Below are positions 8,507 through 64,000 of a stretch of 64,000 bases of DNA, one piece after another. The stretch lies in the sequence record LR756501.1. One strand, 5' to 3'. The notes beneath the pieces were generated by a model that saw only the letters and a list, made by a program, of their open reading frames with translations, made no database searches and was not told the origin of the DNA. The position numbers and the translations under genes were made by a program. Positions within the stretch are counted from its first letter, which is position 1. Every line of letters begins with the position of its first letter.

Positions 8507-8844
8507 AAGTCCATTCTTTCTATTTGATCAATAGGTACATTTTTCACTACCCAGTGATTACCTCTTGCTCTTCTCACGTTTCTATATCTGGTATCTATTT
8601 TCAATACTATTGGATGATGAATGGCTGCTTCTTCTGGTGTTTCTGTTAAATATATTTCACCATTTAAACCATCTCTCATTATACTATCTATCGCTTCAAT
8701 TTCAACAGCGTGATATAAAAAATCTGGAACACCGTTACCATCAACGTCATTCTCATTATCTGCTGGATCTGGTTCGTCTTTAACTAAAAGTTTTTTCAGC
8801 CAANNNNNNNNNNNNNNNNNNNNNGTACAAGATTTAATTCTCAT
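8503..8844 (-). CDS. Putative ART/Tpt1-fold small protein (spans assembly gap)
   Basis: LYHAV...GL...IYLT pattern; N run at 8804-8824. Confidence 0.45.
   Translation of the reverse strand: MRIKSCXXXXXXXXWLKKLLVKDEPDPADNENDVDGNGVPDFLYHAVEIEAIDSIMRDGLNGEIYLTETPEEAAIHHPIVLKIDTRYRNVRRARGNHWVVKNVPIDQIERMDL
8804..8824. other. Assembly gap
   Basis: 21 N bases. Confidence 1.
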
Positions 8845-38812: not shown

Positions 38813-38815
38813 TAG

Positions 38816-38887
38816 TCACCCCAACGGAAGTCGAATCCGTATCTTCGCTGTGAGAGAGCGATTACCTAACCATTAGTAGATGGGGCG
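38816..38887 (-). tRNA. tRNA-Glu(CTC)
   Basis: Cloverleaf; anticodon arm tcgct-CTCTCAC-agcga. Confidence 0.88.
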
Positions 38888-38899
38888 TTATGTAATTTG

Positions 38900-38974
38900 T
38901 ACTCCCGACGAGACTCGAACTCGCAAATCTTCGCCGTGAAAGGGCGATGTCCTAACCAATTAGACGACAGGAGC
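38900..38974 (-). tRNA. tRNA-Glu(TTC)
   Basis: tcgcc-CTTTCAC-ggcga. Confidence 0.92.
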
Positions 38975-38990
38975 ATTTAGTTTCATTGTG

Positions 38991-39064
38991 TGACGCTATG
39001 GGGATTCGAACCCCAGATTTCAAGGATGAAAACCTTGCGTCCTGACCAACTAGACGATAGCGCC
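38991..39064 (-). tRNA. tRNA-Glu(TTC)
   Basis: caagg-TTTTCAT-ccttg. Confidence 0.9.
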
Positions 39065-39114
39065 AAAAATCTTAAAAACTTCTTAATATATATATTGAAA
39101 TAGAAATTGTTTAT

Positions 39115-39540
39115 TTAAACACTATCCTTGATATTCTTTTGTTCTACCGTCAATATTTGCCCTCTGAACCAAGGAGATAAGAAAATCTCTTTATCATCGT
39201 CATACATAACAGCTTCTTGTTCGAAGCCTTCACCAATGCCGTCAGACATTTGACCTTGAGTATAACTTTTCAGAACTTCTACTTCTTCGTCATTTAAGAG
39301 TTCTCTTGATTGGTACTCAATAATAGCGTAGAGAATACCAGCCTTGTAAGCGAACCTCATATATCCACCTTTAACACCTCTGTCTATAAGACATTGCTGA
39401 CCCGGATAATGTTTATCTCCAATTCTAAATGCTTCGTGGAAATATTCTGAAAAACAATCTTGGCAATCTATACCGTCTAATTTGCTTCTATCGTCGATGT
39501 TTGACGAACCAGCTGGTCCTTTTACTGTGATTTTATACAT
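39115..39540 (-). CDS. Hypothetical protein
   Basis: 141-aa ORF. Confidence 0.7.
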   Translation of the reverse strand: MYKITVKGPAGSSNIDDRSKLDGIDCQDCFSEYFHEAFRIGDKHYPGQQCLIDRGVKGGYMRFAYKAGILYAIIEYQSRELLNDEEVEVLKSYTQGQMSDGIGEGFEQEAVMYDDDKEIFLSPWFRGQILTVEQKNIKDSV

Positions 39541-39817
39541 TTTCTAGTTTGTTTTTTGCTTCATTTAAAACTTTTATAAGAACGTCTATTGATTTAGGAT
39601 TTGTAAAAGTCAATACTGCCTCAGGTTTAATATCTTCAAATTTACCTTGTGGTCCGTCTTCGTCATATTCACCAATTTCAAAAGGTTCAGTATTCTTAAA
39701 AAGAACAATCACTTTATTTTCATCCAAAGATTTGTTGTTCATTATAGATATATCACCTTTACCAAATTCTGCCAGTGTACAAATTATTCCATTAACTTTA
39801 GCGTTGAGATATACCAT
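39533..39817 (-). CDS. Hypothetical protein
   Basis: 94-aa ORF. Confidence 0.7.
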   Translation of the reverse strand: MVYLNAKVNGIICTLAEFGKGDISIMNNKSLDENKVIVLFKNTEPFEIGEYDEDGPQGKFEDIKPEAVLTFTNPKSIDVLIKVLNEAKNKLENV

Positions 39818-39818
39818 T

Positions 39819-40082
39819 TTACCTTTTCTTTTTAGTATCTTTCTTGGATTCTTTCTTGTCTTTCCTTACTTCTTTCTTTTCAGATTTAGCTTCTTTCTTA
39901 GCTTCTTTCTTAGCTTCGGCTTTGGCTTCAGTTGCAGTCTTTTCAGCCTTGAAGGCGTCTTTATAATCTTTCTTAGCTGCGTAAGCCCAACCTCTTTCAG
40001 TCATGGAATTGATTTTGATAATGTCTTCCATAGTCTTGTCGTTAACTTTAACGAATTCATCACCTTTTCTGAGAACCTTCAT
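39819..40082 (-). CDS. Small protein with K/E/A-rich repetitive tail
   Basis: AKAEAKKEAKKEAKSEKK. Confidence 0.7.
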   Translation of the reverse strand: MKVLRKGDEFVKVNDKTMEDIIKINSMTERGWAYAAKKDYKDAFKAEKTATEAKAEAKKEAKKEAKSEKKEVRKDKKESKKDTKKKR

Positions 40083-40117
40083 ACTTTTCGTGTTTTTTAA
40101 GATTAGTAAATAAAAAT

Positions 40118-40244
40118 ACAGTTCCAGTTAGATCAGTCACGCGTCTCTACTGCCTTAATTATTCCCTCTTTGTCCTCTTTCGAGATTAGGCTACAGACTC
40201 GATGCCTGTAGCACGCCCAACGCGTAGGGAAGCTGGTTTACTGC
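40118..40244 (-). ncRNA. Candidate structured ncRNA
   Basis: Closing pairing gcagt..ccag/ctgg..actgt; gctacag/ctgtagc hairpin; ctc-GAAA-gag. Confidence 0.45.
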
Positions 40245-40250
40245 ATTTAG

Positions 40251-40323
40251 TAGCAATGGAGGGACTTGAACCCCCAACCTCGAAGGTATAAGCTTCTTGC
40301 GCTAACCATTGCGCCACATTGCT
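40251..40323 (-). tRNA. tRNA-Ile(TAT)
   Basis: gaag-CTTATAC-cttc; normal D and T arms. Confidence 0.85.
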
Positions 40324-40329
40324 ATTTAG

Positions 40330-40401
40330 TTGCGGAGGAGGGGATCGAACCCTCGACCTTCAGATTATGAGCCTGACGAGCTACCGCTGCTCTACTCCAC
40401 G
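40330..40401 (-). tRNA. tRNA-Met(CAT), initiator-like (C1xA72)
   Basis: tcagg-CTCATAA-tctga; D arm gagcagcggtagctc. Confidence 0.88.
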
Positions 40402-40416
40402 ATATATTTTTCCTTG

Positions 40417-40489
40417 TAGCGGAAGAGGGATTCGAACCCCCGACCTACGGGTTATGAGCCCGGCGAGCTGGCCACTGCTCTATTCCGCA
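40417..40489 (-). tRNA. tRNA-fMet(CAT)
   Basis: GGG/CCC anticodon stem, 1:72 mismatch. Confidence 0.9.
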
Positions 40490-40503
40490 ATATTTCTTAT
40501 TAG

Positions 40504-40593
40504 TAGCGGGGATCCGATTCGGACGGATGATGACTTTTCACAAGCCATTTTGGGTTATGAGCCCAATGAGTTAGTCCACTACTCTACCCCGCG
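40504..40593 (-). tRNA. tRNA-Met(CAT), initiator-like with long variable arm
   Basis: ttggg-CTCATAA-cccaa; ~21-nt variable region; T loop TCCGAAT. Confidence 0.7.
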
Positions 40594-40705
40594 ATATATT
40601 TTAAATTGTGTTACCCAATCACTTTCGTGAATACAGCCTCTCTGTCTATAAGGAGTAACCACAATTTATTTTTTAGTCAAAATTTCAAAGTACAATTTCA
40701 CTATG

Positions 40706-40713
40706 CAAATATA
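40706..40713 (-). promoter_or_regulatory. Bacteroidota-type -7 element for the Met/Ile tRNA block
   Basis: TATATTTG; boxA-like GTACTTTGAA at 40684-40693. Confidence 0.6.
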
Positions 40714-40740
40714 CGATAATCATTTCAATTAAAAAAATTT

Positions 40741-41271
40741 TTAAAAATCTTTTATACACCTTAAAGAATATCCATATTTCTTATCACCATCAATCTTTCC
40801 TACACTCGACACTCCATCAAATAAGAAGTAAACCCAAGCTGTTGAAGCGTCTCTTTCTGTTGAACTCCAGTAATAAGAATGAGTATTCATATTTTCTCTT
40901 ATCTTCTTATCAGCGTTATACCTACCATTAAACAAAGAATTAAAACCATTCTTATCTTCTAACTTATCTGCAGCAAACTGTTTACCTATTGTGAGAAACA
41001 ATTTATTCCATTCACTTACTCTTGGAATATGCCAACCATCTGGACAGATACCTTTCATTTGTGAAGTATCTGGTTTTCTTTCATTTAGAATGGTTGTATA
41101 GTTATATAAAGTTGTATCATTATATTTCAAATTTTCACCCATCCAAGTTTGTTCTCCGATTTTGATCCACTTGTAAGATTTGTTATCCCTATTATCAATG
41201 AACGTTCCTTTTGTTTGTGCATTCAATAAGAATGTAGTTAAGACAAACAATAATGTAATTAACCTTTTCAT
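40741..41271 (-). CDS. FISUMP-domain exported protein
   Basis: Signal peptide; TWMGENLKY, ICPDGWHIP, GYSLRCIKD. Confidence 0.85.
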   Translation of the reverse strand: MKRLITLLFVLTTFLLNAQTKGTFIDNRDNKSYKWIKIGEQTWMGENLKYNDTTLYNYTTILNERKPDTSQMKGICPDGWHIPRVSEWNKLFLTIGKQFAADKLEDKNGFNSLFNGRYNADKKIRENMNTHSYYWSSTERDASTAWVYFLFDGVSSVGKIDGDKKYGYSLRCIKDF

Positions 41272-41292
41272 ATTATTCCGATTTTTAATGAG

Positions 41293-41364
41293 TTGCCCCT
41301 AATGGATTCGAACCATTACACCGAGCTCCAAAAACTCGTGTGCTAACCGTTACACTAAAGAGCA
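41293..41364 (-). tRNA. tRNA-Gln(TTG)
   Basis: cgagt-TTTTGGA-gctcg; U1-A72. Confidence 0.88.
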
Positions 41365-41506
41365 ATATATCTTTAACTATATATTGTTTTATTATCTTTA
41401 AGTTTAGAGATAATTTTTTTTAATCTTTCGTCCCTAGTTTTAATGTACTTCATAAGTCTTTCTTTTCCTTCTGTTGATATGCTCAAAACAGTAAATGTTA
41501 TACCTT

Positions 41507-41761
41507 TCATAATTTAAATTTTTTTAAGTCTAATAATCTTACGTTGCCTTCACCCATTGATAAAACTTTATCTAAAGCTTCTTTATCACCAGGTACCCAT
41601 CCAACGAAGTTATTTTTTAATTTTTCCTCTAACTCGACTAATTTATTTAAGTCGTGGTCACAAAGTTCAAAAAGATATTCTGTTTGTCCTCTGGACCTAT
41701 TAGTTGCTGATGTGAATTCTTCAAAGAACTCTTTACCGTAAGTATCTTGTAGTGTTTTCAT
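41507..41761 (-). CDS. Hypothetical protein
   Basis: 84-aa ORF. Confidence 0.65.
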   Translation of the reverse strand: MKTLQDTYGKEFFEEFTSATNRSRGQTEYLFELCDHDLNKLVELEEKLKNNFVGWVPGDKEALDKVLSMGEGNVRLLDLKKFKL

Positions 41762-41774
41762 AGTTTTATATCTT

Positions 41775-42464
41775 TCATCTTAATTTCATTATTTTAAATA
41801 TGTTACTAATAGTTCCTTTACTAACTTCAAAATGTTTTGATATTTCTTTTTGGTTCATTCCTCCATCATGTAATTCTTTAATTTTTATCTTATCCAATTT
41901 ATACTTGATTTCTTTTATGTTTTTTGATTTTTCTAAAATTTCTTCATAATTATTATCAAAAAATCCATCGTTGAAGTGTAAATCCATATGGCAATTTTTA
42001 CATAAAACAATACATTTCTGTAGTTCTTCTTCTAAATCTCTTTTTATATCACTAATCCCACTATCTAACAACAACCTGGATATGGTGATAATTTTATTTT
42101 TTGGTTCTATGTGATGAAAATCTAATGATCCGCTACATTTATCATACCCACATTTTTCACATTTTATATTATTAACATACTCTAATAATATTTTCTTATT
42201 TCTTGTTCTATAACCGTCAATATCGTAATGCAATTCGTGATGGCAATTATAACATAATAAAGAACATTTTTTTAATTCTTTCTCTATTATAGACCATCTC
42301 AGAATTTCTGATATATTCAAATCCTTATCTTCTCCCTCTTTATGATGAAAACATAATTTATAATAACTATTTTCACCACATTTCTCACATTTGCCCCCCA
42401 AATAATTTATAGCTTTAAATTTTTTAGAATATCTATCTATTTTTAACCATCTAATTTTATCCAT
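41775..42464 (-). CDS. HNH homing endonuclease, tandem HNH + HTH
   Basis: Two CxxC..FHH..LCxNCH units. Confidence 0.88.
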   Translation of the reverse strand: MDKIRWLKIDRYSKKFKAINYLGGKCEKCGENSYYKLCFHHKEGEDKDLNISEILRWSIIEKELKKCSLLCYNCHHELHYDIDGYRTRNKKILLEYVNNIKCEKCGYDKCSGSLDFHHIEPKNKIITISRLLLDSGISDIKRDLEEELQKCIVLCKNCHMDLHFNDGFFDNNYEEILEKSKNIKEIKYKLDKIKIKELHDGGMNQKEISKHFEVSKGTISNIFKIMKLR

Positions 42465-42523
42465 TAGTTGTAATCTTTTTTATTATATATATAAATAAAA
42501 AATACAACTTTTTCTCGTTTTTG

Positions 42524-42594
42524 TAGTTCCATCTGGTCATGATCCAGAACCTTTAGTTTCAGAAACTAACTTGCATCCGTTACAACATGGAACT
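42524..42594 (-). tRNA. tRNA-Gln(CTG), atypical T loop
   Basis: ttagt-TTCTGAA-actaa; T loop ATCATGA. Confidence 0.7.
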
Positions 42595-42599
42595 TTTTG

Positions 42600-42672
42600 C
42601 AGCCCCAACTGGATTCGAACCAATACCCGCTCCTTCAAAGGGAGAAATGCTCAACCATTACACTATGGGGCC
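42600..42672 (-). tRNA. tRNA-Gln(TTG)
   Basis: ctcc-CTTTGAA-ggag; G73. Confidence 0.88.
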
Positions 42673-42681
42673 ATGTTTTTG

Positions 42682-42753
42682 TACCGTGAGGAAATTTCGA
42701 AATTCCGGCCTAGCGAATATGAGTCGCTTGCTCTGCCTCTGAGCTACCACGGC
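42682..42753 (-). tRNA. tRNA with CAT anticodon, Ile2-like (or elongator Met)
   Basis: gagcaagcga-CTCATAT-tcgct resembles E. coli ileX. Confidence 0.8.
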
Positions 42754-42758
42754 GTTTG

Positions 42759-42897
42759 TTGGAAGGGGATGAATCGAACATCCGGTCACGGCTTATGATG
42801 CTTGGTTTGTGTTGCTGTACGTAATTTTTATCCGTTTAAAGTCGAATATCAAATTACGGTTTTTGTTTACGTCGTGTTACCACTACACTACCTTCCA
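42759..42897 (-). ncRNA. tRNA-like element with ~65-70-nt insertion in the anticodon arm
   Basis: Acceptor tggaagg/ccttcca, intact D and T arms; insert holds a cgtaattt/aaattacg hairpin and TACAGCAA. Confidence 0.65.
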
Positions 42898-42914
42898 ATT
42901 TCTATTTCAATACG

Positions 42915-42923
42915 TCAAAGAAC
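42915..42923 (-). promoter_or_regulatory. boxA-like element
   Basis: GTTCTTTGAcgTATTGAAATA. Confidence 0.65.
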
Positions 42924-42940
42924 TTAATCTTTATTATTTG

Positions 42941-43011
42941 AACTCCCAACGGATCCCGAGACCGTATCCAGACTGTGAAAAAGTCTAATCCTTCCTTTAG
43001 ACGATAGGAGC
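42941..43011 (-). tRNA. tRNA-Glu(TTC), atypical T loop
   Basis: agact-TTTTCAC-agtct. Confidence 0.7.
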
Positions 43012-43020
43012 ATATGTAAA

Positions 43021-43052
43021 ACAAAAAACCCAATCATTTCTGATTGGGTTCC
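43021..43052 (-). terminator. Attenuator terminator before the Glu/Met/Ile/Gln array
   Basis: aacccaatca-GAAA-tgattgggtt + U tract. Confidence 0.88.
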
Positions 43053-43073
43053 TCGAATATCTTATTAACATTC

Positions 43074-43154
43074 TTAATATGATATAGTCCCTCCAATCAG
43101 GTTTTGAATCTGTTGCATCTGTTCTTGTATCATATTAATTATTCGAAAGTTCAT
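43074..43154 (-). CDS. Leader peptide MNFRIINMIQEQMQQIQNLIGGTISY
   Basis: 27-codon uORF; contains CTGATTGG (43093-43100), complementary to the terminator 5' arm. Confidence 0.8.
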   Translation of the reverse strand: MNFRIINMIQEQMQQIQNLIGGTISY

Positions 43155-43196
43155 AATATTTATTTTTTACTATTTCTATATATTAGACTAAAAAAG

Positions 43197-43379
43197 TCAT
43201 TTTTTTCTATTTTCAGCAGGATAACCTTTTTCTGTTATCGCCTTCATCAATTCATTTAATGTTACTCCAAACCCTTTATCCTTTAAAACCTCTTGTACTA
43301 CTTCTGTTGGTGCTTCTGATGTAAAACTAACATTCTGTAAGTTAGTGTAATCCATATTCGTAAGATAGTATGCAGTCAT
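43197..43379 (-). CDS. Small hypothetical protein
   Basis: 60-aa ORF; TAATTTTG promoter at 43407-43414. Confidence 0.65.
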   Translation of the reverse strand: MTAYYLTNMDYTNLQNVSFTSEAPTEVVQEVLKDKGFGVTLNELMKAITEKGYPAENRKK

Positions 43380-52019: not shown

Positions 52020-54047
52020 TTAAACCTCCATTCTTTCGTAATGCGAAAATGTTAAATTATTTATCGCTCTCCCCTGTGATAAAGTTCTTAAAGTTGTTAT
52101 AAACCCAAACTTCTCAGATAAAGGCGATTTAACCTTTAATATCACAGTTGAATCAGCTAAAGTATCTATTGATACTACCTGCGAACGACGCCTATTCAAC
52201 TCTCCTATTATATTACTTAAATATTCTTCTGGTGTCGCAACTTCTTCATCCATAATTGGTTCCAATAAAACTGGATTGCCTTTCATGTAAGCTGTTGGAA
52301 ATGAAAGTTTAACACAAGTTTCAAAAGCCAACGGACTAGAATCCACAACGTGAATTGCTCCGTCTATAATAGTTACTTTCAAACTTTCAATTTCATTACC
52401 AGCTAAAGGTCCGCTAACCATACAATCTTTGAAAGCTTTTTCAATAGTTGGCATATATTCTCTTGGAATATTTCCACCTTTGACTTCGTTAACAAAGATT
52501 AAACCTTTAGTATCATCAAGAACTGGCTCCATTCTATATTCGATTTCAGCAAACATACCTTTACCACCAGTTTGTCTTGATAATCTTTCTCTATGTGTTA
52601 CTGGTCTTGTAATAGTTTCTCTATAAGAAACTTTAGGTTGACCAGTATTACAATCAACGTTAAATTCAGTTCCTAATCTACTAACTATAACATCAAGATA
52701 GAGTTCACCCATTCCACTAACAACAGTTTGTCCGTTTTCATCAACCTTTACAGAGAAAGTGGGATCTTCTTCAGCCAATTTTTGTAAAGCAAATCCTAAT
52801 TTATCGTTATCTTTATTAGTTAAAGGTTCAATAGTAATTGATATAACCGGTTTAGCATTTGTTATACTTTCAAGTGTAAAGACGTTCTTATCTCCACATA
52901 AAGTATCACCTGTCCAAATATCTTTCATACCAACTATTGCACAAATATCACCAGCACTAGCCGATTTAATATCTGACTTTTTATCAGCCTGAATTGAGAA
53001 CAATCTTGATATTCTCTCAGCCTTTTTAGTTCTAGCGTTGTAAATAGTCTGTCCAACTTTAATAGTGCCAGAGTAAATTCTAATCATAGATAATTTACCA
53101 GCGTTCTTATCAGACATTATCTTAAACACAAGAGCAGATAAAACTTCATTTTCATTTGTTTTAATTTCTATATCTTCTTCGTCTTTCACTGCTGAAATTG
53201 TACTTCTATCCATTGGTGAAGGAAGAAAATTTACAACCGCGTCCAGTAAAGTTTGTACTCCTTTATTTTTCTTAGCTGTTCCACATAAAACTGGAACTAC
53301 TTTAAAATCAAGAGTTAACTTGCGAATTTTATTGAATATATCTTCTTTGGTTATTGTTTCTATTGCTTCAAAATATTGATGCATGAAATCACTATCGTAA
53401 TCACAAATAGTTTCAAGTATTTGTTCGTGATAGTATATTGCGTTAACCAAATATTCTTCTGGTATTTCAGATACTTCGTATTCTTCGCCTAACGTTTCAC
53501 TATTCCAAGTGATATATTTCATATTGATTAAATCAATAACTCCTTTGAAATTATCTTCACTACCAACAGGTAATTGTATAATAAGAGGTTTTGATTTTAA
53601 TCTATTTTCAATTTGTTCAACAACTTTAAAGAAATCAGCACCAGTTCTATCCATTTTATTAATGAAAGCGATTCTTGGAACTTTATATCTATTAGCTTGA
53701 CGCCAAACTGTTTCAGATTGTGGTTGTACACCGCCAACACCACAGAACACTACAACTGCACCATCTAATATTCTAAGTGAACGTTCTACTTCACCAGTAA
53801 AATCAATATGTCCAGGAGTATCTATAATTGTAATTTTATGATCGTTCCATTCGCAAGTAACTGCAGCAGACATAATTGTAATGCCTCTTTCTCTTTCTTG
53901 TGGCATGGAATCTGTGGTTGTATTACCGTCGTGGACTTCGCCCATTTTATGATTTTGTCCAGTATAATACAATACGCGCTCAGTCAACGTGGTTTTACCA
54001 GCGTCGATGTGTGCTATAATTCCTATATTTCTATTTTTTAAGTTCAT
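52020..54047 (-). CDS. fusA: Elongation factor G
   Basis: [35 protein letters not shown], domain V. Confidence 0.97.
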
Positions 54048-54304: not shown

Positions 54305-54601
54305 CTATAATTTAGATTTTAAAATAGCAATCTCTTTTGAACTTCCTATCTTTCTGTATAATTCATCGGGATGAAATCCATCAGCCCAAGTTTTTCCGCA
54401 AGATTCGTGATATTTTTCAGCAAGTCTGTGATGCTCACCACATAAAGATATACCATTTTCTTTTACGTAACCACCTTCAGGCATTTCATTTCTATCTGTA
54501 ATGTGGTGAGCGTCAACTGCCTCCTTATCACAAAAGACACATTTATATCCGTCTCTTTTAAAGACTTCTGTGCGGAAAATATGTCTAATCAATTTCTTCA
54601 T
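54305..54601 (-). CDS. HNH endonuclease
   Basis: RDGYKCVFC, DAHHI, NGISLCGEHH. Confidence 0.85.
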   Translation of the reverse strand: MKKLIRHIFRTEVFKRDGYKCVFCDKEAVDAHHITDRNEMPEGGYVKENGISLCGEHHRLAEKYHESCGKTWADGFHPDELYRKIGSSKEIAILKSKL

Positions 54602-54792: not shown

Positions 54793-54868
54793 TGGCGGCC
54801 CATACGGGAGTTGAACCCGCTCCATACTCCGTGACAGGGAGACATCTTAACCGTTTGACCTATGAGCC
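54793..54868 (-). tRNA. tRNA-Asp(GTC), CCA encoded
   Basis: ctcc-CTGTCAC-ggag. Confidence 0.92.
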
Positions 54869-54873
54869 ATTTG

Positions 54874-54944
54874 CAGTACCGGCAGGATTCGAACCTACAA
54901 CCCCCGCCTCACTGGCGGTACACGTCCAATTGTGCTTCAATACT
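54874..54944 (-). tRNA. Atypical tRNA, possible GTG (His) anticodon in an aberrant loop
   Basis: Acceptor, D and T arms present; ccgcc-AGTGA-ggcgg, no U33. Confidence 0.5.
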
Positions 54945-55004
54945 AACACATTGATTTTATTAGCTCTTATTACAATGTGACTTATACTTTTGATATAAGA
55001 TTTG

Positions 55005-55078
55005 CAGTATGGACGGGATTCGAACCCGCGACCTTCGCCGTGACAGGGCGACATTCTAACCAACTGAACTACCAAACT
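55005..55078 (-). tRNA. tRNA-Asp(GTC)
   Basis: tcgcc-CTGTCAC-ggcga. Confidence 0.92.
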
Positions 55079-55083
55079 ATTTG

Positions 55084-55164
55084 TGGGAGTAGAAGGACTC
55101 GAACCTCCGAACTCTATGAGAACAGATTTACAGTCTGCTGCAATTGCCGCTATGCGATACTCCC
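55084..55164 (-). tRNA. tRNA-Tyr(GTA)
   Basis: gcaga-CTGTAAA-tctgt; long variable arm. Confidence 0.92.
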
Positions 55165-55169
55165 ATTTG

Positions 55170-55242
55170 TCGTGATGATTGGATTCGAACCAACGGTCGC
55201 CTGTTTATCCGACAGGTGCTCTAACCTCTGAGCTACACCACA
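55170..55242 (-). tRNA. tRNA-Ile(GAT), G33 variant
   Basis: cctgt-CGGATAA-acagg. Confidence 0.75.
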
Positions 55243-55331
55243 TCGCCCTGTTTTATTAAGCTTTTATGTGCACTTATTACTTTTTTATTCAGAACGTATT
55301 AACACCTTCCGATGTTAAATATTTTAAAGAA

Positions 55332-55391
55332 CAGAATACATTTGTTGTTTCAATTTACAGTTGAGTCGTTTTTGTTTGCTGTAAGTATTCT
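55332..55391 (-). ncRNA. UUACAGCAA stem element with a Tyr-type anticodon loop
   Basis: agaatac/gtattct stem; tcaa-CTGTAAA-ttga. Confidence 0.55.
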
Positions 55392-55402
55392 TTAATCTCT
55401 TG

Positions 55403-55476
55403 CGGGCCCAGTGAGAGTCGAACTCACATCTGATCGGTTAACAGCCGAGGGTTTTATCCATTAGTACTACAGGCCC
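55403..55476 (-). tRNA. tRNA-Asn(GTT)
   Basis: tcgg-CTGTTAA-ccga. Confidence 0.9.
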
Positions 55477-55491
55477 ATTATGCTTTAATCT

Positions 55492-55566
55492 TGGAGGACG
55501 AGGGGAATATCGAAATCCCGACCCATTGGTTAACAGCCAATCGCTCTGCCTCTGAGCTACTCATCC
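55492..55566 (-). tRNA. tRNA-Asn(GTT), CCA encoded
   Basis: attgg-CTGTTAA-ccaat. Confidence 0.9.
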
Positions 55567-55568
55567 AT

Positions 55569-55645
55569 TGGCTCCCCAGACAGGACTTGAACCTGTGACC
55601 CTTTGATTAACAGTCAAATGCTCTAACCAACTGAGCTACTGAGGA
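55569..55645 (-). tRNA. tRNA-Asn(GTT), CCA encoded
   Basis: tttga-CTGTTAA-tcaaa. Confidence 0.93.
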
Positions 55646-55653
55646 ATATTTTG

Positions 55654-55730
55654 CGGACCCAAAGGGATTCGAACCCTCCTGTTTGTACTGAGTGACAGTC
55701 AGACGGCCACGCCTAGCAGCCCCTGAGTCC
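55654..55730 (-). tRNA. tRNA-Asp(GTC)
   Basis: ctga-CTGTCAC-tcag. Confidence 0.85.
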
Positions 55731-55734
55731 ATTT

Positions 55735-55825
55735 AGTAGTATGTGTATTGTGTAGTTGCATCCGTTGATCAGGCTTTATTACGTAATTATCCTGTAGGAC
55801 TCGGCCGCACATAACCCACACTACT
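55735..55825 (-). ncRNA. Candidate structured ncRNA inside the tRNA array
   Basis: Closing stem agtagtgtg/cacatactact; internal cagg/cctg. Confidence 0.4.
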
Positions 55826-55830
55826 TTTTG

Positions 55831-55905
55831 TCGGCGAGGGAGGACTTGAACCTCCAACCTCGAAGTTATCAGCTTCGCCATCTAACCAATTGATAATACA
55901 CGCCG
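55831..55905 (-). tRNA. tRNA-Ile(GAT)
   Basis: cgaag-CTGATAA-cttcg. Confidence 0.9.
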
Positions 55906-55911
55906 TTGTTG

Positions 55912-55983
55912 AGGTAGTGGAGGGATTTGAACCCCCGTCTCTGGTTTTGCAGACCATCGCCTAAGCCACTCGGCCACACTACC
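55912..55983 (-). tRNA. tRNA-Cys(GCA)
   Basis: tggt-CTGCAAA-acca; U73. Confidence 0.92.
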
Positions 55984-56003
55984 CTATAATAATATTTCAA
56001 TAC

Positions 56004-56013
56004 TTCAAAGAAC
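56004..56013 (-). promoter_or_regulatory. boxA-like element
   Basis: GTTCTTTGAAgTATTGAAATA. Confidence 0.65.
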
Positions 56014-56400
56014 TAATTTATATTCATCATATTTCTTACTAAGAGTAAGTGTACTTTTAGCGTTTATTTCACAACTAGGTATCGAATAAGCATCACCTAT
56101 ATCTGTTAAAATAAACAAAATATCACAATTTCTATTATCAAAGTAATGAATATTGTGATTACTTTTATTTCCACCACACGTTTTAATATTTACATTGTAA
56201 GAACCATATTTAGTCTTATATTGAGTTGTTTTAACTTGAACTTTTTTTAATTCACCATCATCTAATATCAAATCATATTTTTGATTCTCACTTATCGGTA
56301 AAGATACTGTAAATCCCATTTTTTGATATTCATATAGTGCTTTACATAATCCTATATTACCTTGGTCAGTTGTTGTTAAACAGTTTTTAAATAATTCCAT
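56005..56400 (-). CDS. Free-standing PD-(D/E)XK endonuclease (PDDEXK_5-like)
   Basis: GNIG..A, YDLILDD, KVQVKT. Confidence 0.82.
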   Translation of the reverse strand: MELFKNCLTTTDQGNIGLCKALYEYQKMGFTVSLPISENQKYDLILDDGELKKVQVKTTQYKTKYGSYNVNIKTCGGNKSNHNIHYFDNRNCDILFILTDIGDAYSIPSCEINAKSTLTLSKKYDEYKLVL

Positions 56401-56453
56401 TTTCGTTTTTATATTTATATATAAAAAACGGTATGGCCTACCTTTGTAAATAT

Positions 56454-56463
56454 TTCAAAGAAC
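56454..56463 (-). promoter_or_regulatory. boxA-like element
   Basis: GTTCTTTGAAATATT. Confidence 0.6.
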
Positions 56464-56473
56464 TCTTTTTTTG

Positions 56474-56541
56474 TGCCGCCGGAAGGAATTGAACCTTCTC
56501 GCTAAGCTTTTACAGAGCTGTCGTCTCCCTGGATCGTCGGC
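56474..56541 (-). tRNA. Atypical short tRNA with GTA (Tyr) anticodon, no long variable arm, reduced D arm
   Basis: agct-CTGTAAA-agct; gaagg-TTCAATT-ccttc; 68 nt. Confidence 0.55.
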
Positions 56542-56596
56542 TTATAAATTTCTACGCACTATTAGATGCTGCCTATGAAATTTTAACAGTCTGCTG

Positions 56597-56671
56597 TGGG
56601 TATGGCAGGACTTGAACCTACAACCTTGTCGGTATCAGCGACATGCTCTCAACCAATTGAGCTACACACCC
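56597..56671 (-). tRNA. tRNA-Ile(GAT)
   Basis: tgtcg-CTGATAC-cgaca. Confidence 0.92.
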
Positions 56672-56674
56672 GTT

Positions 56675-56806
56675 TAAGATAAGTAATAATGTGGTCTAGT
56701 AATTTATCTTTGAAAGTCCTGATGGGAAGCCAGGCGGGAATCTGTCCTTGTGGGCCAGCCCCCTATTCTCACTAAGTTTCTATACGCGTTTACCAAACTT
56801 ATCTTA
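56675..56806 (-). ncRNA. Candidate rod-shaped ncRNA
   Basis: 10-bp closing stem taagataagt/acttatctta; GC-rich inner stem. Confidence 0.45.
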
Positions 56807-56898
56807 TTTTTAAAGATATTGTTTTCTTTACAATCAGACCTAAATGTTATAGGGTTGAAATCTAATCAACTTTTACAATATCTTATTTTTTCAATATA

Positions 56899-57270
56899 TT
56901 AAAGAACTTCTACTTCTGCACCTATTTCCTTTAAAGAAGCCTCAAGTGCTACTGCCTCTTCCTGACTTATATTCTCTTTCAATTTACTTGGAACATTATC
57001 AACTAATGTTTTTGCTTCCATTAATGTGTTTCCAATCATTTCCTTTACAGTTTTAACAAGTGTTAATTTACTTCCTGTACCAATTGATTTCAATACTACT
57101 GTAAAACTTGTCTTATCTGCGACTAAAGTAGGAATTGGTATTACATTTACTCCTAGAATCTTAGTCTTGGGTGATATACCATACTCTTCTTTCATTATCT
57201 TCGCCAATTGATAACATTCGAGTACAGTAAGATTACTTAATTTCTCGGCGAACTCTTTTATATTTTCCAT
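56899..57270 (-). CDS. rplL: Ribosomal protein bL12 (L7/L12)
   Basis: LTVLE..LAKIMKEEYGI; KTSFTVVL, KLTLVKTVK, LMEAKTLVD, LKEIGAEVEV. Confidence 0.93.
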   Translation of the reverse strand: MENIKEFAEKLSNLTVLECYQLAKIMKEEYGISPKTKILGVNVIPIPTLVADKTSFTVVLKSIGTGSKLTLVKTVKEMIGNTLMEAKTLVDNVPSKLKENISQEEAVALEASLKEIGAEVEVL

Positions 57271-57295
57271 TTCAATTTTTCTATTTTATTTTTAT

Positions 57296-57305
57296 TTCAA
57301 AGAAC
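57296..57305 (-). promoter_or_regulatory. boxA-like element just past the attenuator terminator
   Basis: GTTCTTTGAAAT. Confidence 0.7.
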
Positions 57306-57317
57306 CAAACCCCCTAA

Positions 57318-57352
57318 AAACACAAAACCCCATTCATTTCTGATTGGGGTTA
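57318..57352 (-). terminator. Attenuator terminator before rplL and the Ile/Tyr/Cys/Asp/Asn array
   Basis: aaccccaatca-GAAA-tgaatggggtt + U-rich tract. Confidence 0.85.
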
Positions 57353-57376
57353 GCCGTGTTCCGTAATAAACAAAGT

Positions 57377-57445
57377 TCATCCAATCAGCATTTTCAGCTT
57401 ATCATTAATACAATAATCATTATATTTGCGAACCATGTTTTTCAT
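57377..57445 (-). CDS. Leader peptide MKNMVRKYNDYCINDKLKMLIG
   Basis: 23-codon uORF ending CTG ATT GGA TGA; CTGATTGG (57381-57388) complementary to the terminator 5' arm. Confidence 0.85.
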   Translation of the reverse strand: MKNMVRKYNDYCINDKLKMLIG

Positions 57446-57549
57446 ATCTTTGTTTCCTTATATATTTTATAAAAATAGTCTGTTTTTTCCATTTTCAATT
57501 ACACCGCGAACTTAATGAAAGTTCGCGGTATAATCAAATTATTTCAACT

Positions 57550-57798
57550 TTATTTTCGACTTATATCTAACTTTAGTCGGATTAAGTCAGGAAAACACCT
57601 TACACATCCTACATTACCACAATGACCGTAATGATGATCTTCCAAAATTGTGCTTCTTTTCTTACGTTGGAATCTTTTAGATTTACCATTGATCCCTAAC
57701 CTCTTCAATTCAGCATATTTTGCTTTATTGGCGGCCTTACGATTACGTTTTTCCTGTAAACGTTTTTCCCTGTTATTTAACTTAGCTTTCTTACTCAT
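57550..57798 (-). CDS. Highly basic small protein with His/Cys motif
   Basis: Start 57798 gives MSKKAKL; HHYGHCGNVGCVRC. Confidence 0.65.
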   Translation of the reverse strand: MSKKAKLNNREKRLQEKRNRKAANKAKYAELKRLGINGKSKRFQRKKRSTILEDHHYGHCGNVGCVRCFPDLIRLKLDISRK

Positions 57799-57994
57799 AG
57801 TTTTATGTGTTATTTTGGTTAAACTAAACACTGGATTTTCCAGTGTGGACCCAAGGTAGCGAATCCTGTGTCCAAGTAGTCCGACCAAATCGCACTAAAA
57901 ACCACTAATAAAAAGAACAACTGTTATGTATTATATAATGAAATTATTAAAAGTTTTAATAATCTCAAAAAAATTTTGTTTCTGATTTAGATTA

Positions 57995-63185: not shown

Positions 63186-63240
63186 AATAAGTTTTTATCT
63201 TTATATATAAAAATTATATGGTCCCATTGTTTCATATTTG

Positions 63241-63314
63241 TGGCCCTACCCAGACTCGAACTGGGACATCAAGTTTCTAAGACTTGCGCGACTACGCTAT
63301 TACGCCATAGAGCC
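63241..63314 (-). tRNA. tRNA with TAG (Leu) anticodon, short variable loop
   Basis: caagt-CTTAGAA-acttg; 4-5-nt variable loop. Confidence 0.8.
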
Positions 63315-63319
63315 ATTTG

Positions 63320-63392
63320 TAACCCTGCACGGAGTCGAACCGAGATATTCTGGTTTTAAGCCAGACGCCACTACCAATTAGGCTACAGAGTC
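63320..63392 (-). tRNA. tRNA with TAA (Leu) anticodon, short variable loop
   Basis: tctgg-CTTAAAA-ccaga; 4-5-nt variable loop. Confidence 0.8.
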
Positions 63393-63402
63393 ATTTTTAT
63401 TG

Positions 63403-63486
63403 TACCGAGGATGGGAGTCGAACCCACACGTCCGTAAGGACACTGGTTTTTGAGACCAGCGCGTCTACCAGTTCCGCCACCTCGGC
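63403..63486 (-). tRNA. tRNA-Leu(CAA)
   Basis: ctggt-CTCAAAA-accag; long variable arm. Confidence 0.93.
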
Positions 63487-63489
63487 ATG

Positions 63490-63610
63490 TGATGAAGTAA
63501 TAGGATTCGAACCTATATGACTGATTTCTCAGCGGTTAGCCCTTGTACTTCGGTCTTTCCCATTTTCACCCTAAACGGGTGATACGTTTCCATTTTAGTC
63601 CTACTTCATC
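63490..63610 (-). ncRNA. tRNA-like element, up to 9-bp acceptor, expanded body
   Basis: gatgaagta/tacttcatc; atagg-TTCGAAT-cctat; tcaccc/gggtga; ctga-GAAA-tcag. Confidence 0.55.
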
Positions 63611-63612
63611 TG

Positions 63613-63696
63613 TGCGGTTAAGGGGACTCGAACCCCTACGTCCTTGCGGACACCAGCCCCTCAAGCTGGCGCGTCTACCAATTCCGCCATAACCGC
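63613..63696 (-). tRNA. tRNA-Leu(GAG)
   Basis: ccagc-TTGAGGG-gctgg. Confidence 0.93.
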
Positions 63697-63702
63697 GTTG
63701 TG

Positions 63703-63784
63703 TGCCCTTGACAGGACTCGAACCTGCACATCCGAAGACACTAGATCCTAAGTCTAGCGCGTCTACCAATTCCGCCACAAGGGC
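63703..63784 (-). tRNA. tRNA-Leu(TAG)
   Basis: ctaga-CTTAGGA-tctag. Confidence 0.93.
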
Positions 63785-63790
63785 ATAAAC

Positions 63791-63928
63791 AGATTGCCTT
63801 TTTAAAATAAGGTTGGATTCGAACCAACATTCTCCATCTTTGCTTTTTCTCTGCGTCCAATGGTGTGTTACCCTTACACTACTCTCCCAATTTTTGGCGG
63901 GAGCCGTTTTGTTTGCTGTAAGCAATCT
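63791..63928 (-). ncRNA. UUACAGCAA stem element enclosing a degenerate tRNA body
   Basis: agattgc/gcaatct stem; D arm gtgt/acac; T arm gttgg-TTCGAAT-ccaac. Confidence 0.55.
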
Positions 63929-63944
63929 TTATTATTTCAAAATG

Positions 63945-63953
63945 TTAAAGAAC
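63945..63953 (-). promoter_or_regulatory. boxA-like element
   Basis: TGTTCTTTAACA, one base from E. coli boxA TGCTCTTTAACA. Confidence 0.7.
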
Positions 63954-63954
63954 A

Positions 63955-63990
63955 TAAAAACAAAAAACCCAATCATTGCTGATTGGGTCT
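63955..63990 (-). terminator. Third attenuator-type terminator, before the Leu array
   Basis: acccaatca-GCAA-tgattgggt + U tract. Confidence 0.85.
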
Positions 63991-64000
63991 CTGTGACTTC

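Follow-up and report, generated by a model that had tools for sequence, protein, structure and literature searches.

Predicted leader-peptide attenuators ahead of tRNA gene arrays in huge phages

In the attenuators of amino-acid biosynthesis operons (trpL, hisL, leuL, pheL, thrL and ilvL), a promoter-proximal short ORF with clustered regulatory codons precedes an intrinsic terminator whose 5' arm can instead pair with an upstream antiterminator strand, and the position of the ribosome chooses between the two structures. Multivalent leaders exist, with thrL responding to Thr and Ile and ilvL to Ile, Leu and Val. The modules described here, which lie ahead of tRNA gene arrays in the largest known phage and its relatives, including the Lak megaphages of the human gut, share this anatomy. 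However, the regulated genes are tRNA genes instead of biosynthetic enzymes, up to six or more amino acids would be sensed in one leader, the elements are encoded by phages under a late-type promoter, and no trp-type 1:2 anti-antiterminator or pause helix was found, so that the predicted default without translation is read-through instead of superattenuation. The 1:2 helix defines the trp-type design and not attenuation in general. No match to the Rfam amino-acid leader families (Trp, His, Leu and Thr leaders) was obtained, either at the gathering score or at E <= 5. The pheST (pheM) attenuator of phenylalanyl-tRNA synthetase applies leader-peptide attenuation to a gene of the translation apparatus and senses Phe-tRNA supply, but it controls a synthetase, senses one amino acid and is chromosomal. 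The Escherichia coli tRNA-Phe gene pheV itself showed no such leader in the roughly 100 nt upstream of it. The T-box riboswitch also couples the status of a specific tRNA to read-through of a terminator by way of an antiterminator, though it binds uncharged tRNA directly through a specifier codon and the T-box loop, needs no ribosome and controls synthetase, transport or biosynthesis genes, and no T-box (RF00230) match was found here, even at E <= 5. The L10(L12)4 rplJL leader places a terminator upstream of an L12 gene, as does the present locus, but RF00557 gave no match, and the present leader is conserved in relatives where no bL12 gene follows. In rrn-type operons, boxA (NusB/NusE) antitermination acts at the head of a long untranslated stable-RNA operon; an 11-mer resembling boxA, a GTTCTTTGA(A/C)A-like motif, follows the terminator in all five modules of the present genome and in 15 of 35 modules overall, being limited to part of the clade. 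Its function is inferred from this sequence resemblance alone and, as NusB/NusE binding was not assayed, the observation leaves its role as an antitermination site undecided. Full-text literature searches, which did not extend to subscription journals, and the Lak and huge-phage papers gave no description of leader peptides or attenuators ahead of phage tRNA arrays, nor of attenuators ahead of tRNA genes. The proposed mechanism is thus a known one, whereas the regulated product (the tRNAs themselves), the setting (huge phages) and the predicted default-ON three-segment design are new.

The window, that is, the whole 64,000-nt stretch of DNA analysed, is identical to bases 131,061-195,060 of LR756501.1 apart from a masked run of 21 N. 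LR756501.1 is a 735,411-bp uncultured phage, the largest genome of Al-Shayeb et al. 2020, belongs to the Mahaphage clade and has a predicted Bacteroidetes host (PMC7162821). A first-pass annotation made from the sequence alone described an attenuator at 57 kb, in which a short ORF with eight consecutive codons for Tyr, Asn, Asp, Cys and Ile, an antiterminator strand in its last codons, a complementary terminator arm and a boxA precede an array of tRNAs for the same five amino acids, and a recurrence of the same architecture at 43 kb with different codons. This observation was confirmed, as all the elements lie where they had been placed, on the minus strand (Table 1). Two points required correction. 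The terminator is not directly ahead of the array, because a bL12 (L7/L12) gene lies between them, and ARAGORN found one Tyr tRNA instead of two, the additional tRNA called only by Rfam looking like His(gtg). The eleven tRNAs of the array are thus Ile x3, Asp x3, Asn x3, Cys and Tyr. In addition, a third copy of the terminator, which had not been listed, lies ahead of a Leu array close to the window end.

Table 1. Features of the predicted attenuator modules that touch the window (positions are those of the window).
Module	Feature	Position (strand)	Details
First (57 kb)	Whole element	57316..57445 (-)	Leader to U-tract
First	Promoter motif, late-type class	57459..57489 (-)	GAAAAAA-N2-GAC-N2-TTT-N7-ATATATA
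First	Leader ORF	57377..57445 (-)	22 codons plus TGA; encodes MKNMVRKYNDYCINDKLKMLIG
First	Control block, codons 8-15	57401..57424 (-)	TAT AAT GAT TAT TGT ATT AAT GAT (Y-N-D-Y-C-I-N-D); all eight read by anticodons of the downstream array (gta, gtt, gtc, gca, gat)
First	Antiterminator strand	57381..57388 (-)	CTGATTGG; codons 20-22, stop codon starts one base after it
First	Complement of the antiterminator, in the terminator 5' arm	57340..57347 (-)	CCAATCAG
First	Terminator hairpin	57328..57349 (-)	CCCCAATCA / GAAA loop / TGAATGGGG; -10.2 kcal/mol
First	U-tract of the terminator	57316..57327 (-)	
First	boxA-like motif	57295..57305 (-)	GTTCTTTGAAA
First	bL12 (L7/L12) gene	56899..57270 (-)	Pfam PF00542 and PF16320; first gene of the read-through transcript
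First	tRNA array	54793..56671 (-)	Ile, Cys, Ile, Asp, Asn x3, Ile, Tyr, Asp x2, plus a His-like tRNA at 54874-54944
Second (43 kb)	Promoter	43177..43207 (-)	Record position 174267
Second	Leader ORF	43074..43154 (-)	26 codons; control block I-I-N-M-I-Q-E-Q-M-Q-Q-I-Q
Second	Antiterminator strand	43093..43100 (-)	CTGATTGG
Second	Complement of the antiterminator	43040..43047 (-)	Same octamer pair as in the first module
Second	Terminator hairpin	43022..43055 (-)	-19 kcal/mol
Second	tRNA array	38815..43011 (-)	Met, Gln x3, Met x3, Ile(tat), Glu x3, plus tRNA-like genes at 42940-43011 and 42795-42935
Third	Leader	Beyond the window end	L014:15089-15157, minus strand (L014, the stretch in which this leader was read); antiterminator TTGATTGGGT pairs with the terminator arm
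Third	Terminator hairpin	63960..63994 (-)	Copy of the terminator core at 63986..63968
Third	boxA-like motif	63943..63953 (-)	GTTCTTTAACA
Third	tRNA array	63240..63888 (-)	Leu (tag, taa, caa, gag, tag) plus one tRNA-like gene

The elements are far from chance expectation. The octamer CTGATTGG occurs five times in the window against 1.55 expected, and the 19-nt terminator core gives three exact copies in the window, and six places with up to 3 mismatches, against 0.19 places expected. These three copies are the only exact ones in the 735-kb genome, each lying ahead of a tRNA array. Furthermore, among 3,990 small ATG-ORFs in the whole genome, only one, the present leader, has a run of 8 or more residues drawn from N, D, Y, C and I. 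Reading upstream of the two other large array regions of the genome showed two more modules with different terminators, giving five modules in total, three of which touch the window. The same 31-nt promoter motif precedes all five leaders and also the portal, prohead protease and major head genes of this genome, and it was thus read as a late promoter. The five leaders and the tRNAs downstream of them are, respectively, a leader with 7 Leu codons that uses all six Leu codons and Leu x5; the Y-N-D-Y-C-I-N-D leader and Ile, Cys, Asp, Asn and Tyr; the M/Q/E/I-rich leader at 43 kb and Met, Gln, Ile(tat) and Glu; S-K-H-S-K-H-F-S-S-S-S-K-W-F and Trp, His, Phe, Lys and Ser; and a GC-rich run of T, P, A, V, R and G codons, in a 32% GC genome, and Arg, Thr, Val, Ala, Gly and Pro. 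The 5x5 leader-against-array matrix was best on the diagonal in 1 of 120 permutations, and single-leader binomial P values ranged from 3e-2 (P = 0.03 for the whole ORF at 57 kb) to 4e-5 (14 of 25 residues in the array's amino-acid set for the leader at 43 kb). In each module, the strand complementary to the terminator's 5' arm lies just after the control block and changes when the terminator changes, being CTGATTGG or TTGATTGGGT, TTCGGGGTT and GGGTGTGGG(T).

The first-pass annotation had stated in advance that its reading would fail if leader codons and array anticodons were uncorrelated in homologues, and the correlation examined here proved to be strong. An exact search for the terminator in IMG/VR returned no hit, and a search of the phage collection with the bL12 protein found only unrelated phages, whereas the promoter pattern recovered at least 120 stretches from IMG/VR. 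In about 45 of the 133 promoter sites in these stretches, a short ORF and a tRNA array follow, yielding 30 further distinct leader peptides; L157 was left out because the first ATG assigned to it was wrong. Homologues of the 57-kb leader in the IMG/VR loci L151, L131, L161 and L079 keep the composition but not the order of N/D/Y/C/I. Where the grouping of tRNAs differs, the leader composition differs in step. The module L145 has Gln tRNAs and Q in the leader but no Val tRNA and no V, L056 reads S/L/H/Y ahead of Tyr/Ser/His/Leu tRNAs, and L065 adds Ile to both, though some leader residues have no tRNA in the array, for example Ser in L065 and Ala in L149. Across 21 modules with complete arrays, 0 of 20,000 shuffles reached the observed match, with an odds ratio of 14.7 (P = 2e-25, the cells not being independent), and shuffling only within leader classes gave 0.003, 0.05 and 0.083. 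The match was specific to the reading frame, at 0.51 in frame against 0.21 in each of the other two frames.

A second, independent set was obtained by locating relatives through the major head protein. The 634-, 642-, 636- and 462-kb Mahaphage genomes carry at least 12 more modules with yet other groupings, namely P/Q/D (L184 and L188), K/Q/D/Y (L192), E/Y/G/I/A (L186), L/S/C (L193), N/L/T/V/I/M/R, H/E/V/W/L and E/A/I/V/G, the L numbers denoting modules in these relatives. Several arrays in the relatives (L182, L190 and L195-L197) showed no leader-terminator by the scan used, and L189 was dropped because the ORF paired with its terminator is the C-terminus of a protein gene. Two modules were read in each of the Lak-B5, Lak-A1 and Lak-C1 genomes, with C/M/H/P/G/R among their groupings, and both leader-terminator DNA stretches are present at 88-100% identity in all 15 Lak megaphage genomes from gut Prevotella. 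In Lak-B5, one leader carries C-M-H-P-V-C-G-M-I-H-M-F-P-C-G-G-G-R ahead of His, Pro, Arg x2, Gly x2, Cys and Met (P = 6e-6). Across 14 modules from five other huge-phage genomes, 0 of 50,000 shuffles reached the observed match. Among cultured relatives, Tenacibaculum phage PTm1, Chryseobacterium phage MA9V-1 and Flavobacterium phage MaF61 have no tRNAs, and Tenacibaculum phage pT24 has a few tRNAs without a leader, so that no cultivable example was found. Most tRNA gene clusters examined sit behind a small ORF written in the codons that their tRNAs read, followed by a terminator/antiterminator switch, which looks like a sensor that makes phage tRNAs only when decoding of those codons is slow.

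At the level of codons, the match was less clear than at the level of amino acids. For split codon boxes (Ile ATY/ATA, Ser AGY/TCN, Arg and Leu), it was weak, with 37 codons with a matching tRNA against 20 without, though undetected aberrant tRNAs may explain part of this. Codon diversity was significant only for the Leu leader (P = 0.008) and marginally for the T/P/A/V/R/G leader (P = 0.044). The first-pass annotation had also noted that all control codons end in U and that the leader could be sensitive to queuosine status. NAU codons make up 81% of NAY codons in the N-class leaders against about 70% genome-wide, a marginal bias (P = 0.03 on non-independent sequences), and queuosine sensing is speculation.

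The predicted RNA switch was examined by shuffle and cross-pair controls. A MAFFT alignment of the S/K/H/F/W class put the antiterminator out of register between subgroups, and column-wise covariation counts were thus not run. Against dinucleotide shuffles of each leader, the duplex with its own terminator arm was stronger at P <= 0.01 in 22 of 36 modules. Duplex energy with the module's own arm averaged -14.4 kcal/mol against -7.4 kcal/mol for other modules' arms, and the own arm was best in 25 of 35 modules and first or second in 32 (Wilcoxon 6e-11). An intrinsic terminator, that is, a hairpin plus U-tract, lies 16-44 nt after the leader stop codon in all 35 distinct modules of the first set. 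Folding of the nascent RNA up to the terminator loop gave the antiterminator helix as the minimum-energy structure in all five modules of this genome, with the antiterminator strand pairing only with the terminator arm, and adding the 3' arm shifted four of the five to the terminator. In the module at 57 kb, however, the antiterminator is only 8 bp and is less stable at equilibrium than the terminator alternative (-14.0 against -18.9 kcal/mol), so the switch must be kinetic. No helix sequesters the antiterminator strand beforehand, and the design therefore has three segments and is predicted to be ON without translation.

The geometry proposed by the first-pass annotation, in which a ribosome at the stop codon would cover the antiterminator and one stalled on codons 8-15 would leave it free, fits the 57-kb leader, where the last control codon ends 12 nt before CTGATTGG. 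Over the modules, the antiterminator starts a median of 6 nt after the last matched codon that lies upstream of it, the stop codon lies a median of 15 nt after the antiterminator (range -1 to 34), and the terminator arm starts a median of 26 nt after the stop codon. In many modules, the last control codons lie within about 6 nt of the antiterminator, and a stall there would occlude the antiterminator instead of freeing it. Every leader has an ATG, an open frame and a stop codon, and the placement of a short ORF immediately downstream of a promoter and upstream of the array holds in about 50 modules. Most leaders have no clear Shine-Dalgarno sequence, which is expected for Bacteroidota hosts but does not help the case. 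Evidence of transcription is weak, as contigs from RNA libraries cannot show starts, ends or strand and may contain DNA. One run has two perfect 151-nt records, at 57291-57441 and 57169-57319, which cover the leader, cross the terminator and enter bL12, while the flanking genes are almost uncovered in that run. A close strain gives one RNA-library contig that aligns from 57843 to 56879 and, after a strain-specific 94-nt gap, to 56595. In another run, a contig of a roughly 97% identical strain ends at 57455, 4 nt downstream of the promoter motif.

Considering these results, we propose with fairly high confidence that the module is a ribosome-mediated transcription attenuator whose regulated product is the set of tRNAs that read the leader's own codons. 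Transcription would start at the late-type promoter, and the 22-codon leader would be translated as it is made. If aminoacyl-tRNAs for Tyr, Asn, Asp, Cys and Ile are plentiful, the ribosome would run to the stop codon and cover or unwind CTGATTGG, the terminator hairpin would form, and RNA polymerase would stop at the U-tract. If any of these tRNAs is scarce, the ribosome would stall on codons 8-15 and leave CTGATTGG free to pair with CCAATCAG, the terminator could not form, and polymerase would read on through the boxA-like element, the bL12 gene and the tRNA array. As the new tRNAs accumulate and are charged, leader translation would speed up and termination would resume, giving a negative-feedback, supply-on-demand loop. 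The analysis itself demonstrates the sequence elements, their recurrence, the frame-specific match of codons and arrays and the covariation of antiterminator and terminator, whereas translation of the leader, stalling, conditional termination and the feedback loop are inferences from these; no experiment was performed, neither leader translation nor read-through under limiting aminoacyl-tRNA was measured, and transcription-translation coupling in the unknown host is assumed. The attenuation mechanism offered by the first-pass annotation was thus supported, whereas its trigger, tRNA depletion by anti-phage anticodon nucleases, is speculation.

The alternative that survives best, though it is doubtful, accepts the same switch but makes host anti-phage tRNA cleavage or depletion its specific physiological trigger, so that it would be a counter-defence sensor instead of one of general supply-demand homeostasis late in infection. 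The switch reads the decoding speed of defined codons, which is what an anticodon nuclease would lower, the three-segment design is predicted to be ON when translation collapses, and phage tRNAs are reported to counter tRNA-targeting defences. However, nothing in the sequence points to a nuclease, the leaders cover nearly all amino acids and not only the known nuclease targets, and the promoter class shared with the head genes fits ordinary late-phase demand equally well; the sequence does not tell depletion by defences from such demand or from amino-acid shortage. In a broader and still tentative reading, huge Bacteroidota phages of the Mahaphage clade, including the Lak megaphages, may run a distributed, codon-resolved sensor of the cell's decoding capacity, in which most tRNA arrays are gated by their own multi-codon leader that is ON by default when translation fails. 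The phage would therefore detect which host tRNAs have been depleted or cleaved, for example by anticodon-nuclease defences or by its own shut-off of the host, and replace just those. This would be the first case of tRNA genes under leader-peptide attenuation and a new layer of the phage-host contest over translation.

An opposite or different coupling is unlikely. In this view, leader translation serves only to protect the transcript from Rho or to load ribosomes, or stalling causes termination, or the hairpin is a constitutive leaky terminator or processing site that sets a fixed low level of the array. The closeness of the last control codons to the antiterminator in many modules, the need of long untranslated tRNA arrays for protection from Rho and the presence of a boxA-like motif are in its favour. 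However, a fixed terminator explains neither why an upstream complement of its 5' arm covaries with it in 25-32 of 35 modules nor why leader codons track array content, and in the 57-kb leader all eight control codons lie far enough upstream to leave the antiterminator free. Even less likely is a ribosome-independent RNA switch in which the leader RNA binds tRNAs directly, as in a T-box, or binds a protein such as L10(L12)4, with the ORF being incidental. The 57-kb module does precede a bL12 gene, and rplJL leaders that attenuate transcription are known (PMC4538822), but neither T-box, L10_leader nor any other Rfam family matched even at E <= 5, bL12 is absent at this position in the relatives L151 and L079 that keep the leader, and the codon match is frame-specific with composition conserved but order not, which is the signature of codons being read by ribosomes. 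Chance, by which AT-rich intergenic sequence happens to contain a short ORF rich in the N, I, Y and D codons common in a 32% GC genome next to an ordinary terminator, is refuted, in spite of the P = 0.03 for this one leader, by the uniqueness of its run among the small ORFs, by the match in five of five modules in the genome and about 45 more elsewhere, by the covariation of antiterminator and terminator arm and by the GC-rich run of one leader in an AT-rich genome.

Phage-encoded tRNAs are usually discussed as constitutive helpers for codon usage or as decoys against tRNA-targeting defences, and how their expression is controlled is essentially unknown. The modules suggest that the largest phages measure the decoding speed of specific codons and feed the result back onto transcription of the matching tRNA genes, turning the classic amino-acid attenuator into a tRNA homeostat. 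The idea gives a direct explanation for why tRNAs are grouped into particular arrays, namely that each group shares one sensor, and it predicts that codon swaps would re-programme which shortage induces an array. The parts are compact, at about 130-230 nt, and could serve as codon-specific reporters of tRNA availability. The system occurs in Lak phages of human and animal guts as well as in freshwater phages, so it is widespread. In the present phage, the same switch also heads a bL12 gene, and an EF-G gene follows the array on the same strand, which hints at a regulon for translation capacity.

Four tRNA-like genes in the window, at 42795-42935, 42940-43011, 63804-63888 and 54874-54944, were missed by standard ARAGORN. 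One has a 68-nt insertion, one is Glu(ttc)-like and starts 8 nt after the terminator at 43 kb, one has a 13-nt insertion, and one is His(gtg)-like. The genome has several more tRNAs with long insertions. Two tRNAs with anticodon CTA (amber suppressors) were also found on the plus strand of L039, a stretch of the same genome, away from the arrays and without a leader, though whether TAG is reassigned in this genome was not tested. A run of 21 N within the window was left unfilled. PD-(D/E)XK and HNH endonuclease ORFs sit inside the tRNA array on the same strand and look like homing endonucleases, and a group I intron (RF00028) was detected within the tRNA array of L151, a related IMG/VR contig.

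The full-length EF-G homologue lies directly downstream of the array on the same strand and may belong to the same attenuator-controlled transcript as bL12. Between bL12 and tRNA-Ile, a 94-nt stretch is replaced by 14 nt in a roughly 97% identical strain seen in lake metagenome and metatranscriptome contigs, and a GC-rich structured stretch in this region has no Rfam match. In relatives (L151 and L131), the roughly 600-700 nt between the terminator of the N/D/Y/C/I class and the first tRNA has no ORF of 40 aa or more on the coding strand; this interval looks like structured RNA and likewise has no Rfam match. On the other side of the leader, a perfect 11-bp hairpin without a U-tract lies between the upstream ORF (57888..57550) and the leader promoter, and may be the end of the upstream transcription unit.

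Additional features of the window, of other stretches of the genome and of related contigs
Location	Feature
window 8804-8824	Run of 21 N
window 42795-42935	tRNA-like gene
window 42940-43011	tRNA-like gene
window 63804-63888	tRNA-like gene
window 54874-54944	tRNA-like gene
window 56005-56400 and 54305-54601	PD-(D/E)XK and HNH endonuclease ORFs
window 52020-54047	EF-G homologue, full length
window 56785-56878	94-nt stretch between bL12 and tRNA-Ile
window 56700-56790	GC-rich structured stretch
window 57502-57530	11-bp hairpin without a U-tract
L039:10585-10738 (record 690.6 kb)	Two tRNAs with anticodon CTA, plus strand
L008:11900-18200 (record 71.9-78.2 kb)	Promoter motif ahead of portal, prohead protease and major head genes
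L151:5812-6025	Group I intron (RF00028)
L151:4578-5300, L131:6042-6620	Interval between the N/D/Y/C/I-class terminator and the first tRNA

The promoter motif of the leaders was also found, in the stretch of the genome designated L008, ahead of the portal, prohead protease and major head genes. A search of IMG/VR with the motif returned at least 120 stretches, and it is thus a widespread promoter type in these phages.
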